Shown piece by piece: positions 25,301 through 34,300 of a DNA stretch of 64,000 bases. A program made the position numbers and the translations under genes. Position 1 is the first letter of the stretch, and every line of letters starts with the position of its first letter. The notes beneath the pieces are model-generated. The model was not told the origin of the DNA, made no database searches, and saw only the letters and a program-made list of their open reading frames with translations. The stretch is from Macrostomum lignano (Eukaryota), in contig NIVC01001122.1 of assembly GCA_002269645.1 (NCBI GenBank), positions 124,001-188,000 on the forward strand. The letters are read 5' to 3'.

Positions 25301-28300
25301 TGCAGCTAACCTACAGATTGTACTGACACCAATATGCCAGTCTGTTTCAAAGTCTCAGTAGAATATCAGTTGTAAACTGTCAATCCTGAATTCTCGTATA
25401 AATGCCAAATTTGACAGGCCCAGTCTGGAGACGGCAAGTCAGCTTTGATGCAGACGAGTGACGCAAGCAACTCTGGCAAAATGAAGACGATTTTTTTGTG
25501 CTCAACCGCAAAAGTTTGTTTATGATGATATTGACTGCGACAGCTTTTCGCTTTCTGTGAGATGATTCCGCTATCCGTCGTAACATGTCTTGTCCGTCCG
25601 TTAAAACTTTTTTCATTTTTCAAAAATTGAGTGGAAAGTTGTTCTATTGTAGCTCGTAATACGTGAAATTTATTAGGCAAATGTATTTATTAATTATATC
25701 GTCGTCAATCTACTTGCCTTTTGGCACATATTTGGGACGTTAAGTGTGTTTCTTTAGGTTTATCATTATTCTAGTGAAAAACAAAGATGACTTTTTGCTA
25801 TTTAAACTTTTGCTTGGCCGTTGATTTGCACTTCTAACTATTTTTCTCGGCCTAAAAATTAGTTGCATTTGATTCATTTGTTTTTAATGGGGATGATGGT
25901 TCTTGAGTCCGGCGCAAAGTAGAACTGAATGCATTATTTTTACTTTATTACATATTGTGTATTTGGGGCTTTTGTCACGTGACTTTTAGTGTTGTTTCTC
26001 GTGCTTAACAGTACTGGGTCGATAATAATCGCAGTACTCTGCTAAAAAATGATGGTCCACCTAAACGGTGTCTTTTTGAAGGTCCACCTAAAACAGGTCC
26101 GGGCTGGTCCAGCTATCCCAGTTGAAAGTGACATGCAGTTTCCACGAGATGGCTAATCTGCAGGCTAAACTGAAAGACAACCCACGCTAACTTTTCGTGT
26201 AGAGACAAAAGACACCGGTTTTATAGCGAAACTAGGTGGTCCACCTAATGCATTAACAAAACTCTGGTCCCGCTAAACACACAGACAGCGGTATGTCTGT
26301 CTGTCTGTCTGTCTGTCTGTCTGTCTGTCTGTCTGTCTGTCTGTCTGTCTGTCTGTCTGTCTGTCTGTCTGTCTGTCTGTCTGTCTGTCTGTCTGTCTGT
26401 CTGTCTGTCTGTCTGTCTGTCTGTCTGTCTGTCTGCCTGCCTGTCTTTCTGTCTGTCTGTCTGTCTGTCTGTCTGTCTGTCTGTCTGTCTGTCTGTCTGT
26501 CTGTCTGTCTGTCTGTCTGTCTGTCTGTCTGTCTGTCTGTCTGTCTGTCTGTCTGTCTGTCTGTCTGTCTGTCTGTCTGTCTGTCTGTCTGTCTGTCTGC
26601 CTGTCTGCCTGTCTGCCTGTCTCTCAGAGTGTCTGTCCGTCTGTCTGTCTGCCTGCCTGTCTGTCTGCCTGCCTGTCTTTCTATCTGTCTGTCTGTCTGC
26701 CTGCCTGTCTGTCTGCCTGCCTGTCTTTCTATCTTTTGAGTTTGTCTCTGAGCTGCAGCACACAGAACTGATGATGCACACGAGATGAACCAGTGAGATA
26801 TACTACTTAACCGAGTATAAAGTATATAGTCGAGATTTTAGACGATAAAGAAGCTGGTAGCTGGGTTGGATAACTTGAATACCTAAAACTGCTAAGCCAC
26901 TGTGAACCCCAACGCCCCAAGTGAGCCACCGTACACTGCCAACTGTTTGAGCTGAAGTCTCAAGCTACTGAGCAGTTGTGCGCCGGTGCAGACACAGATG
27001 ACAGGCAGGGAGAGAGGCTGGGTAGGAACGGCCTCATCTCGAAGGTTAATTTATTAATGATGAGCTGCCGGTCTGCTCAGTGGCTGAAGGCCTGCCGGAG
27101 GCTTGGAGCCTGGTGGGTGGGGGCCGAAAAAAAATTCAATCCCAACGCCAATCGGCCGATTCCTTCCTCGCACATCGCTCCTTGAACTCTCGTGGCGAGA
27201 GTGCCTCTCTCTCTCTCTCTACTCTTTCTCTCACTCTCGCCCTCCTGTGGAACCTGTTTCCTCTCCAATTTTACCCGCCCCCTTTTCTTTGCCACACTTT
27301 TCTTATTCTTGGCCCATTCTATCCAGCAACCTGCTCAGCTCAGCCCTATACAGAGTTCTTTTCAGTACGAGTATTGACTGCAGCTCCTTAGCTCCATAGG
27401 GGAGCCAAGGGCCTAGTGACAAACTGCATTTCCCATGGTCTCCTTCTCTCTACTCTCTGCTTAATTTTATCCACTCCATCTTTCCTACCATTGGCTGTTG
27501 ATCTCTCTCCATCATTCTCTGGTTTGCCTCTCCCAGCTTACAGAGGAGAATAAAGTCAAATTGAAGTTTGGCGATCCTTGAAGTCGCAATACCTCTGCCT
27601 TTCTTAATGAGGTGTTCCCTACCCACCCCCTTATCAAACCCGGAAGAGGGTCTTCCCGTCAGCGAAAGTAAAGCCAATGAGCGGCCAGTCGCAGGGAATG
27701 GACCGCTGAACACTTCAGAGTTGTGTCGTACTCTACTCAGAGGCCCTGCTACGTCGCCCACACCGCCAACTACACCCTCAGTTTCCATTGTGCACCCTGC
27801 CCGCTCTCCCAGCTTCCAAACAGCCGCCAAGCCACTCAAGCAGACGGCCTGGGGAGGACGGAGCCGGGGGGAAGGGGGGCCCGCCAACCCCAGCGCTCAT
27901 TCCACCGCCCTTCCTTCCCTCCAAGCCGACCCCCGGCCAGACGGGCGAACCAAAGCGATTGCCGCGGCTAAACTCAGACCGCGCCCAGCGCCCCAAGCCG
28001 CAAACAGCTTCCTGTTTCCAAGCCCCTCGCCGCCCGTCGCCTCTCCATCTCTTCTCGTGTCCACTTTCATTCCCAATGTAGCTTTTTTGTCAAAAAAGCA
28101 CACTTATCTAACTGGGCAGTGCGCTAAAACGCGATCGCGGGACCAAAGCCTCGATTATCATTTTTAATCGTCGGAGCAACTAGCAAGCGCTCCTCACCCA
28201 GCGGTTGCCGACATTTCCCCAATGGGTGGCCGTTGCGGCTGACAGCAGCAGCAGCAGCAGCAGCAGATGGCCTCCTTCTGGGGCAACAAATTTGACCAGG

Positions 28301-31300: not shown

Positions 31301-34300
31301 CAACGGGTTTAAGAGTTCCAGGGGTGCAAAGCTGAGATGCAGTTTTGCTTTAACGTTTTTTTCGCGATTCCCCACCCCGCTGCCACCATTGTCGATTGCT
31401 GAAATTTGAAAATTGAAGTTAAAATTGAAAAACAACTTTCTACAAATAAATTGTTTGTAGCTAATTTTAGTTGGTATGCAGATTAGCCAGTTAGAAATAT
31501 ACAGGCCTCAGTTCGGGTAGGAGTAACTACTGCAGTTTTCCCTCAAGACAAACTTTTCATTTTGTCTCCCTGTTCTCCAGGCAAAACATGTCACTACTAA
31601 CTAAGTAGGTTAAATGGAACAGAATACCCTCAATTTTAAGTGGCGGCAGCCGCGGCCCGCTGGGAGGCGGCCGAGATCGAGTTGAATTCGCGCCGGCTAC
31701 GCCTCGAAGCCGAGGAGGCGGCGGCCAACGCTGCCCAGCAGGAGCTGCTGCAGTGGGAGAAGCACTGCCGGCTTCTCGAAGCTGAGGACGGCAGCGTGCC
31801 CGGGTCAGTTCGGGAGGCTCAGCTCCTGGCCGCTATTGAAGAGGGTCGCCGATTACGGGAGCGACTGGATGCCGAAGACGCGGCACTTGACAAGCGCTTG
31901 GACGCCCTTCAGCGCCTGCTGAGTGCAAGGCGGAACCAGATTCGTCGCCAGGTCAGCGAGCCGGGGCATCAAGCTACTCGCCAGGTGAGCAGTGAAGTCA
32001 GTCCGCCTCGACCTGCGGCAGCTCCGCGCAAGTCAACGATGGCTCCACCGCCGCCACCGCCGCCGAAGCCACCGAAGCCGCAGCTGTCGGCAGGCGATGA
32101 GAAAGATTTGATCTCGCGTCGTCTGCAGCAGCAGCAGCAGCAGCACAGCATGGTAAGTTTTAGGGAAACATAGCATGACAGCCAAAACAAATGCTTTTAT
32201 TTACTGCTTTCACCATTCTGAATTCTACAGGAGAAACCAATTGAGCCATCAATGTCGAAGCAACAAGACCACCAACAGTTACAACAGCAACAGCAGCAAC
32301 AGCTGCAGAAAAAGCAACAGAATGAGGAACAATATCAACAGCAACAACAAGAGAAGCAACAATATCAACAACAGCAACAACAAGAGAAGCAACAAAATCA
32401 ACAGCAACAACAAGAGAAGCAACAATATCAGCAGCAACAACAAGAGAAGCAACAACAAGAGAAGCAACAATATCAGCAGCAACAACAAGAGAAGCAACAA
32501 TATCAACAGCAACAACAAGAGAAGCAACAATATCAGCAGCAACAACAAGAGAAGCAACAATATCAACAGCAACAACAAGAGAAGCAACAATATCAGCAGC
32601 AACAACAAGAGAAGCAACAATATCAGCAGCAACAACAAGAGAAGCAGCAATATCAACAGCAACAACAAGAGAAGCAACAATATCAGCAGCAACAACAAGA
32701 GAAGCAACAATATCAGCAGCAACAACAAGAGAAGCAGCAATATCAACAGCAACAACAAGAGAAGCAACAATATCAGCAGCAACAACAAGAGAAGCAACAA
32801 TATCAGCAGCAACAACAAGAGAAGCAGCAATATCAACAGCAACAACAAGAGAAGCAACAATATCAACAGCAGCAACAACAACAACAACAAAAGGAACAAG
32901 AGCAGCAGCTTCAGCACCAACAACAACAGGTCAAGAAACAGCGACAAGAAGACCAGCAGCAGCAACAACAAAGACCGACTGTCGTGGTGCGTAGATCAAA
33001 AAAATTTGTACACTTTTAAGTTCAAAAAATGACTTGAGTACTATTGTTGCATGTTGTACAGAAGCTTTTCTTACATGTACTTGCTCCATTTTAGCCTACC
33101 TCGCAGCAGCAGCAAAAACTTCAACAGCAAAATAAGCAGCCACAACAGCATCAGCAAATCCGACCGGAGCTTTTGGCCCGACTGGAGCGCATGGAGTCGC
33201 GAGCGACTCATTGGGAGACGGCCCTAGCGGCGCTGCCAGCAGAGCTGATAGCTGAGGAGGATCTGAGGCAGGCTGCTTCCCTGCTCAAGGTGAGTTGGAT
33301 TCAAAGAATTTAAAGTCAACTGAAGGCCTTCTTGAGACCCGCGCTATGACTCTGATCTTACAGGCGTGGCCTCCATTTTTTGCGTCAATCTACCTTGATC
33401 CTAATTTGGGGCTCGTGCACAAATATTCGCTTGCTGGTGCTGCATGTCGGACGATGAGAAGTCAGGGCCGCTGTACACCCTGTGCTGTACACCCACGTAC
33501 GTATCCGTATCAAGGACCACTAGACGTACTGGTATACAACGGCAACTTCTAGTGGTCCTTGGTCCGTATGCGTGCGAGTGCTCAGGAACTCGACTCCCAT
33601 TACTGCAATCTCTAAGAAGGGAATCTTTTCTTTGTAGATGATATCAAATTTCAAACGGTTCAAATTGCAGTCAGCCTTCATAAATACTCGTCGATGCACC
33701 TCGTAGTCTCTCAGCTAAGCAGCTATCGCTAGTCTCTGTATTTTCACTCAAAGCCAAGCGACTCAAGTCAGATTGTTTATCAGATCGATCTGTCTGTGTG
33801 CCTGTCCACCTGGGCATGCGTCGGCACGGGCGACATACGAGGCGACTTCAACGGGCCGAGCGCGTCCAAGCGGACGGAGTACGTGACTACCCGACTTAAA
33901 CAGTTTTAAGACCTGAAAGCCAAGGACATTTCAATAGAATCTGACTGAGATGCCAAGGGTTAATTAGGTGTTGTTGGTAGGCGAATCAGCAGAGTTGCGC
34001 TTAGGGTTAAGCCATGGCTAAAAGGGACGCTTTCATGCCAAAGCTCAAATGAGGTGCCGATATCTTAGGCTGGACGGACTCGATTGCCAAACCCGCAGGC
34101 TCTCGACGCTGACGCAGAGCAACTGGCCTCAGAGCCCGCGCCACCTTCGCTGCCGCCTGTTGGCGACGCCCTCGCCGAGCGCCTCGCCGCAGCCGGGCAC
34201 CGCTGGGAACGCCTCGGCGAGGAGTCGTTGAATCTGCGCCAGCGAGTCGAACGCGGCCGGGAGGCCCTGGCTGAGCTGGTCGGCCGGCTTCGCAGCCTCG

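Follow-up and report, generated by a model that had tools for sequence, protein, structure and literature searches.

Introduction

N-terminally truncated dystrophins that are made from promoters in large introns are standard in the dystrophin family, as exemplified by Dp260, Dp140, Dp116 and Dp71 and by Dp186 and Dp117 of Drosophila. Internal promoters in large dystrophin introns have been described in vertebrates, Drosophila (Dp205) and sea urchin (SuDp98); the promoter of Dp116, G-utrophin, SuDp98 and Dp205 may be ancient, intragenic promoters accompany large introns, and the first exon of G-utrophin encodes a strongly helical peptide (PMC1790709). Here, we analyzed a 64-kb stretch of the genome of the flatworm Macrostomum lignano (contig NIVC01001122.1; hereafter, the window, in the coordinates of which all positions are given), the plus strand of which contains a dystrophin gene of this species. 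Within a large intron of this gene lies an exon, referred to here as the head exon, that is probably the first exon of an N-terminally truncated short dystrophin isoform transcribed from an internal promoter.

The closest counterparts of this arrangement are found in vertebrate Dp116, G-utrophin and DRP2, in which, as predicted for the M. lignano candidate, a unique first exon located in a large intron of the distal rod is spliced to a common exon that starts in the middle of a repeat, with the last few repeats, the WW, EF-hand and ZZ domains (WW-EF-ZZ) and the coiled coil being kept and no actin-binding domain. The heads of Dp116 and G-utrophin are short, whereas the M. lignano head comprises ~303 amino acids (aa), is mostly disordered by prediction and has no sequence similarity to them; moreover, unlike Dp116 and G-utrophin, the M. 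lignano isoform would have a long Pro/Gln-rich linker and approximately three repeats after the entry point. Drosophila Dp186, Dp205 and Dp117 as well as SuDp98 are, like the candidate, invertebrate short dystrophins from intragenic promoters in large introns, but their heads are unrelated in sequence to that of M. lignano, which has no homologue. SuDp98 uses an internal initiation site, whereas the M. lignano candidate is predicted from sequence to start with a long unique coding exon. Like the known short dystrophins, the predicted isoform would keep the distal repeats and the end that binds dystroglycan, syntrophin and dystrobrevin. Finally, two M. lignano proteins in UniProt, A0A1I8I9D8 ("BMERB domain-containing protein"; hereafter, P0001) and A0A1I8JQK2 ("Uncharacterized protein"; hereafter, P0002), contain the head exon joined to the same common exon as predicted for the window; unlike the window, both are in frame at a position where the window lacks a base, and both are fragments that have not been recognised as dystrophin.

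Results

A candidate internal first exon in the dystrophin gene

The head exon is located in the intron at 14721-31640, which with 16,920 nucleotides (nt) is the largest intron of the window, and its coding part is preceded by the sequence TGA(CAG)8ATG at 28240-28269. At its 3' end, the donor G/GTGAGT at 29175/29176 is in phase 1 in the frame that is used there, and the acceptor ttttaag/TG opens the following exon at 31641. Because exon 14570-14720 and the head exon both end in phase 1 with a G, each of them forms a GTG codon with the TG at 31641-31642. The head exon cannot continue the phase-1 exon 14570-14720 as coding sequence because there is an in-frame TGA 24 nt 5' of the ATG and because all CAGs of the run are in phase 0. 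In these respects, our analysis confirms an earlier note on this DNA, which had placed TGA(CAG)8ATG, the GC-rich region ahead of it, the N-terminal peptide of the head and a 17-kb intron where we find them, had excluded the head exon as a continuation of exon 14570-14720 on account of the in-frame TGA and the phases, and had considered both exons splice-compatible with 31641, giving GTG in either case. In the AlphaFold2 model of the alternative junction, 14720/31641, a single unbroken helix (residues 144-242; predicted local distance difference test score (pLDDT) 70-89) runs across the junction, which fits a spectrin repeat that would be kept in the long isoform and truncated in the short isoform. 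The product of exon 31641-32152 is predicted to form two long helices (pLDDT 84-96).

We used a codon log-likelihood trained on the confirmed exons of the window and the periodicity of nucleotides by codon position to evaluate the coding potential of the head. The log-likelihood was positive in frame 0 only at 28201-28800 and in frame +2 only at 28951-29175, and was near zero or negative in any frame upstream of the head. Chi2 values for periodicity were 48 (p = 1e-8) in the 5' part and 28 (p = 8.5e-5) in the 3' part of the head, compared with 49-73 in confirmed exons and 2-10 in introns used as controls. In sliding windows, periodicity switches on at ~28200 and off at ~29200-29300, and the G-richest codon phase moves from frame 0 to frame +2 at ~28800-28900, i.e. 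at the 1-nt deletion described below. Once this deletion is repaired, all 311 codons of the 934-nt region are open, a result that was reached by 3 of 2000 shuffles when any of the six frames was allowed. From these four independent signals, we conclude that the head is a coding exon, beyond chance, and that the limits of its coding signal coincide with the ATG and the donor.

Frame +2 remains open for 165 codons past the donor (29175-29669), with 0 stops versus 9-10 in the other frames. The read-through stretch at 29176-29669 has a chi2 of 9.6 (p = 0.14), similar to the intron controls, GC content drops from 0.65 to 0.48, and Pfam gave no match for the read-through open reading frame (ORF) past 29175. 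An extension of the exon to 29669 was rejected because of the missing codon periodicity and the drop in GC content, and the stretch was treated as intron; the open frame could be the remnant of a once longer ORF or could be due to chance.

Public gene models and the predicted connection to dystrophin

The head exon is ~97-99% identical to P0001 and P0002, and identical across all in-frame parts. P0001 reads ...CGSDEGRV/ over the junction, which corresponds exactly to 29175/31641, and P0002 likewise links the head to the exon at 31641. P0001 is a fragment without a start methionine, and P0002 ends one residue before the donor at 32152. From exon 31641-32152 onwards, the chain of common exons was verified up to the ZZ exon at 39983-40587, with CAG/exon/GTRAG-type splice sites, no stop, and only phase-0 junctions after the first; the chain covers 31641 to 40587, with the coiled-coil ORF at 43721-44617 lying outside it. 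Because neither P0001 nor P0002 extends past the 31641 exon, it is from the open exon chain that we infer the continuation into WW-EF-ZZ and the C-terminus of dystrophin.

P0002 contains out-of-frame stretches and a 7-residue micro-exon, GPGICSG (~29567-29587), taken from the intron, and is visibly an ab initio product in which a predictor patched the indels of an error-rich assembly. It starts at an upstream ATG (28222 in the window), an extra base in its copy having removed the TGA, and it illustrates how indel errors of the ML2 assembly pass into UniProt proteins. In P0001, Pfam found no family at E <= 5, and no bMERB domain (PF12130) was found in the product of exon 31641-32152; thus, the bMERB label of P0001 in UniProt was not reproduced, and the gene models of this locus are fragments, one of which is misnamed. 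The public models document that the exon and the junction are already annotated, not that they are used in RNA.

As for the host gene, Pfam identified EF-hand_2 (PF09068; E = 1.4e-11), EF-hand_3 (PF09069; E = 7.7e-11) and ZZ (E = 1.5e-11) in the ORFs at 35234-37102 and 39959-40588, and the WW motif SPWQR...PYYRN...WDHP lies within exon 35270-36133. Vertebrate dystrophin, utrophin and DRP2 share 43-46% identity with the assembled WW-EF-ZZ segment, which aligns to residues 3049-3352 of human dystrophin with E = 3.1e-84 but to dystrobrevin with only 4e-42; its homologues include a sea-cucumber protein named SuDp98, and a 197-aa UniProt fragment of M. lignano shows 100% identity over the part of the segment that it covers. 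By sequence similarity, the host gene belongs to the dystrophin branch of the dystrophin/dystrobrevin superfamily. In the rod region, the Pfam Spectrin match (E = 1.4e-5, 25.9 bits) is below the cut-off of 29.9, human dystrophin was the sole match in a PDB sequence search (E = 0.0017, over several repeats), and AlphaFold2 predicts long helices. A Foldseek search with the AlphaFold2 model of the long-isoform junction returned generic long-helix matches, none of them at E <= 0.001. The ORF at 43721-44617 carries the conserved dystrophin coiled-coil helix motif as judged by comparison with the human motif. In a search with exon 14570-14720 and the exons following it, no model containing exon 14570-14720 or exon 34099-34788 was found.

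One of the common exons, 32231-32986, is an in-frame exon candidate consisting almost entirely of a 30-nt tandem repeat (~16 copies, encoding a 10-residue unit). It is flanked by tacag/ and /gtgcgt and is in phase 0 on both sides, and would thus be a coding minisatellite or a skippable cassette; its repeat number is likely polymorphic or mis-assembled.

A missing base in the head exon

The frame that starts at the ATG comprises 215 codons and is closed by the TGA at 28912-28914, short of the donor, whereas the last 97 codons of the head lie in frame +2, the open stretch of which begins at 28626. A length of 909 nt from the ATG is incompatible with a phase-1 end of the exon; the window lacks one base. 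The window reads GAAG-CGACC at 28885/28886 (GAAGCGACC), while other copies imply GAAGGCGACC with one G more; P0001 and P0002 are both in frame at 28885 and share a common reading through the site, whereas the window peptide splits between frame 0 and frame +2. Inserting one G yields an exon of 910 nt, i.e. 303 codons plus one base. The ~300-aa head exists only after this repair or in other copies, and is not intact in this window. Several claims of the earlier note are therefore valid in part: its phase-1 donor at 29176 applies to the frame in use there but is never reached from the ATG, and its head of ~300 aa requires the inserted G, the ATG frame of the window giving only 215 codons. The word "corrected", which it attached to an isoform of 5919 nt (a total that we can split into 910 + 5009), may allude to this repair, but the missing base was left unstated.

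Two explanations can be given for the missing G, namely a base-level error in the assembly and a lesion in one duplicated copy of the locus. The difference is of the type G versus GG, i.e. a change in length. Only 32% (ML2) and 64% (Mlig_3_7) of the bases in M. lignano assemblies were called error-free, and the sequenced line, DV1, has extra large chromosomes and 180 Mb of duplicated blocks that are at least 95% identical (PMC5730564). Because codon periodicity is undiminished on both sides of the deletion, the lesion, if real, would be recent. In the next exon, P0001 and the window disagree at one more residue (K/E), and this difference implies that P0001 derives from another copy or another assembly.

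The head protein

The ~303-aa head is acidic (net charge -18) and rich in Ala, Ser and Gly. A word-indexed search covering 5.8 billion proteins and an exhaustive HMMER search of 1.84 billion representatives revealed no homologues beyond the two M. lignano models, and Pfam gave no match for the head. The composition and the orphan status are as described in the earlier note, which had called the head novel, acidic and Ser/Gly/Ala-rich, but they are those of a protein that the window does not encode intact. In AlphaFold2 without an alignment, pLDDT was <50 over most of residues 22-284, and the head is predicted to be mostly disordered. Residues 2-23 were modeled as a helix with low pLDDT (~52-55). 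The hydrophobic moment (muH) is 0.54 for residues 5-22 and 0.44 for residues 2-21, the latter value being reached by 147 of 10,000 shuffles. An amphipathic helix at the N-terminus, as proposed in the earlier note, is plausible given the hydrophobic moment, the shuffles and the modeled helix but unproven.

Two alike short motifs are present in the head (residues 16-30 and 90-103; 28267-28620), each following an aromatic pair (FW or WF), and may point to a small duplication within the head.

The region upstream of the head exon

GC content is 64% at 27650-28060 and 0.59-0.64 over 27650-28239, the observed/expected ratio of CpG upstream of the head ATG is 0.83-0.93 versus 0.50 in the flanking intron, and the region has no codon periodicity (chi2 3-8). 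The simplest reading is that the head exon may have its own promoter in the GC- and CpG-rich region at 27.7-28.2 kb. ATG depletion of the putative 5' untranslated region (UTR) was not significant.

In M. lignano, the spliced leader ends in ATG and trans-splice acceptors carry the motif YTNCAG (PMC8629364). None of the CAGs in the (CAG)8 run matches YTNCAG, the sole occurrence of which in 27600-28300 is at 27713, and the spliced-leader sequence of M. lignano is absent from the window. We therefore rejected the addition of a spliced leader at the CAG run, which the earlier note had raised, because the acceptor motif is lacking.

Directly upstream of the head, a 200-codon open frame on the plus strand (27565-28164) is in the same frame as the head ATG, with stops at 28165 and 28240 and no periodicity. 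Splicing of the phase-1 exon 14570-14720 to the YTNCAG acceptor at 27713 would enter this open stretch in frame and would bring the long isoform to an end.

Alternative explanations

We consider the internal first exon of a short dystrophin isoform to be the probable explanation. A promoter within the 16.9-kb intron would transcribe an alternative 5' exon, non-coding from ~27.7 kb and coding at 28267-29175, that would be spliced at 29175/31641 to the common exons. The product would be without the upstream spectrin repeats and presumably without the actin-binding domain, and would keep two helices of one repeat, the Pro/Gln-rich linker, approximately three spectrin-like repeats, WW-EF-ZZ and the C-terminal coiled coil; the short amphipathic helix of the lineage-specific head could serve as a different anchor to the membrane or to a partner. 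From this copy, translation would stop after 215 codons. The coding signature, the phases, the open chain into WW-EF-ZZ and the junction in P0001 speak for the short dystrophin isoform that the earlier note had predicted, but the head is frameshifted here. It is important to note that we infer that the exon is transcribed, that it has its own promoter and that the junction is used in vivo, as well as any role of the head. Moreover, several observations weigh against this explanation. No core-promoter or TATA-like motif was found in the upstream GC-rich region. The head ORF is broken in the window copy and P0002 appears broken at several places, and broken ORFs are also the pattern of unconstrained sequence; because the head has no homologue outside M. 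lignano, no evolutionary constraint is measurable. Neither P0001 nor P0002 continues beyond the 31641 exon, and the database models may rest on the same sequence signals as the inference in the earlier note and are not independent proof of splicing.

A related possibility, which we regard as doubtful but deserving of attention, is that the exon is real and the deletion is real as well, such that this copy yields a 215-aa product or an mRNA that is subject to nonsense-mediated decay, with the intact isoform coming from a duplicated copy. This possibility is compatible with the internal first exon as the explanation for the species and differs from it for this locus only. It accounts for the in-frame TGA at 28912 and the frame switch at 28885/28886, the duplicated blocks of DV1 would provide the second copy, and the K/E difference puts P0001 in another copy or assembly. 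However, a change in the length of a GG run is typical of long-read assembly errors, the error-free fractions of both assemblies are low, and periodicity on either side of the site matches that of intact exons in strength, which means that any inactivation would be recent. We think it quite unlikely that the head belongs to a separate nested gene that either borrows only exon 31641-32152 and then ends or runs unspliced through 29176 to the stop at 29670. That P0001 and P0002 reach no farther than the 31641 exon and that frame +2 is free of stops beyond the donor would be expected for such a gene, but exon 31641-32152 ends in a strong phase-0 donor, G/GTAAGT, with no AATAAA behind it, and the frame runs on through at least six further exons. 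Similarly, the two models look truncated rather than complete, one being without a start methionine and the other one residue short of the donor, P0001 has no bMERB domain, and the read-through stretch is like intron in periodicity, GC content and Pfam result. Least probable of all, and very unlikely in our opinion, is that there is no exon, i.e. that GC-rich low-complexity intron happens to be open beside a good donor and has misled predictors and the earlier note alike. GC-rich DNA of this kind does contain long ORFs in several frames and on both strands (e.g. an ORF of 168 codons on the minus strand), the orphan peptide is of low complexity, and frameshifts are present in two of three copies. 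Chance would, however, have to produce a periodicity equal to that of bona fide exons and bounded by an ATG and a donor, a log-likelihood that is positive solely in the frame in use, an open frame reached by only 3 of 2000 shuffles, and a donor phase that fits the acceptor shared with the long isoform.

Table 1 Features of the head exon and its splice partners in the window
Feature	Position	Strand	Remarks
GC-/CpG-rich non-coding region, putative internal promoter and 5' UTR	27650-28239	+	from composition; promoter role putative
Six-codon upstream ORF MGGRCG	28222-28242	+	same frame as main ATG, closed by TGA
In-frame upstream stop TGA	28240-28242	+	
(CAG)8 run	28243-28266	+	immediately 5' of start codon
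Start codon ATG of head	28267-28269	+	
Head coding sequence, 5' part, frame 0	28267-28885	+	ORF 28267-28914; identical to P0001 residues 1-174
1-nt deletion site	28885-28886	+	shifts frame
Premature TGA in ATG frame	28912-28914	+	result of deletion; ORF stops after 215 codons
Head coding sequence, 3' part, frame +2	28887-29175	+	ends in phase 1; open frame 28626-29669; matches P0001 residues 175-269
Intron, 2465 nt	29176-31640	+	donor GTGAGT, acceptor ttttaag; (GA)n microsatellite 31085-31165
First common exon	31641-32152	+	accepts exon 14570-14720 or head exon
Upstream spectrin-repeat exon of long isoform	14570-14720	+	alternative 5' partner of 31641; ttttcag/AAC ... GCTG/gtgaga, phase 1
Downstream common exons	32231-32986, 33107-33289, 34099-34788, 36849-37220	+	
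Common exon	35270-36133	+	WW and EF-hand
Common exon	39983-40587	+	EF-hand and ZZ

Other features of the window

Minisatellites and microsatellites predominate in the introns, among them the stretch 14721-27600, in line with the published description of the M. lignano genome (PMC5730564). These repeats include a 28-nt unit (x74), a 38-nt unit (x31), a 15-nt unit, (CAGA)n, (TGTC)n and (CTAA)n, occupy stretches such as 16188-18268, 19542-19858, 21000-22191, 26294-26734, 34820-35240 and 36135-36780, and many of them produce spurious ORFs of great length in every frame. In the region upstream of the dystrophin exons of the window and antisense to them, the minus strand at 1549-6631 contains long ORFs of a non-LTR (long terminal repeat) retrotransposon resembling a long interspersed nuclear element (Exo_endo_phos_2, 9e-23; RVT_1, 4e-30; RNase H, 7e-13). 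The next downstream gene, on the plus strand at 62960-63871, encodes a lipid-transfer protein of the Hobbit/FMP27/BLTP2 family (Pfam PF10344, 7e-57); the ORF covers profile positions 958-1294 and would thus be an internal exon of a large gene.

Discussion

The arrangement described here is ordinary for the dystrophin family, and the exon and its junction are in part already present in public gene models. The rod of the M. lignano protein aligns weakly to many repeats of human dystrophin (best 989-1223; also 2544-2729 and 2768-2923) and provides no positional anchor for human intron 55. The earlier note had regarded the short isoform as independently evolved; the sequence would fit an ancient internal promoter as well as independent evolution. 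As a bolder proposal, to which we give little credence, the promoter could lie in the flatworm equivalent of the intron that harbors the Dp116/G-utrophin/SuDp98/Dp205 promoter, with a 303-aa head recently born from GC-rich intron and grafted onto an old promoter. If so, the proposed ancient bilaterian promoter would extend to Platyhelminthes.

For the annotation of this locus, the finding means that a frame-breaking base difference in the assembly must be handled. Should the head exon be transcribed, the dystrophins of M. lignano would include a short form with a head of its own, and the locus would provide a case from Platyhelminthes for deciding whether intragenic dystrophin promoters in large introns are ancient or evolved repeatedly. 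In that case, M. lignano, as a transgenic, regeneration-competent flatworm model, would allow the functions of the dystrophin complex to be examined isoform by isoform.

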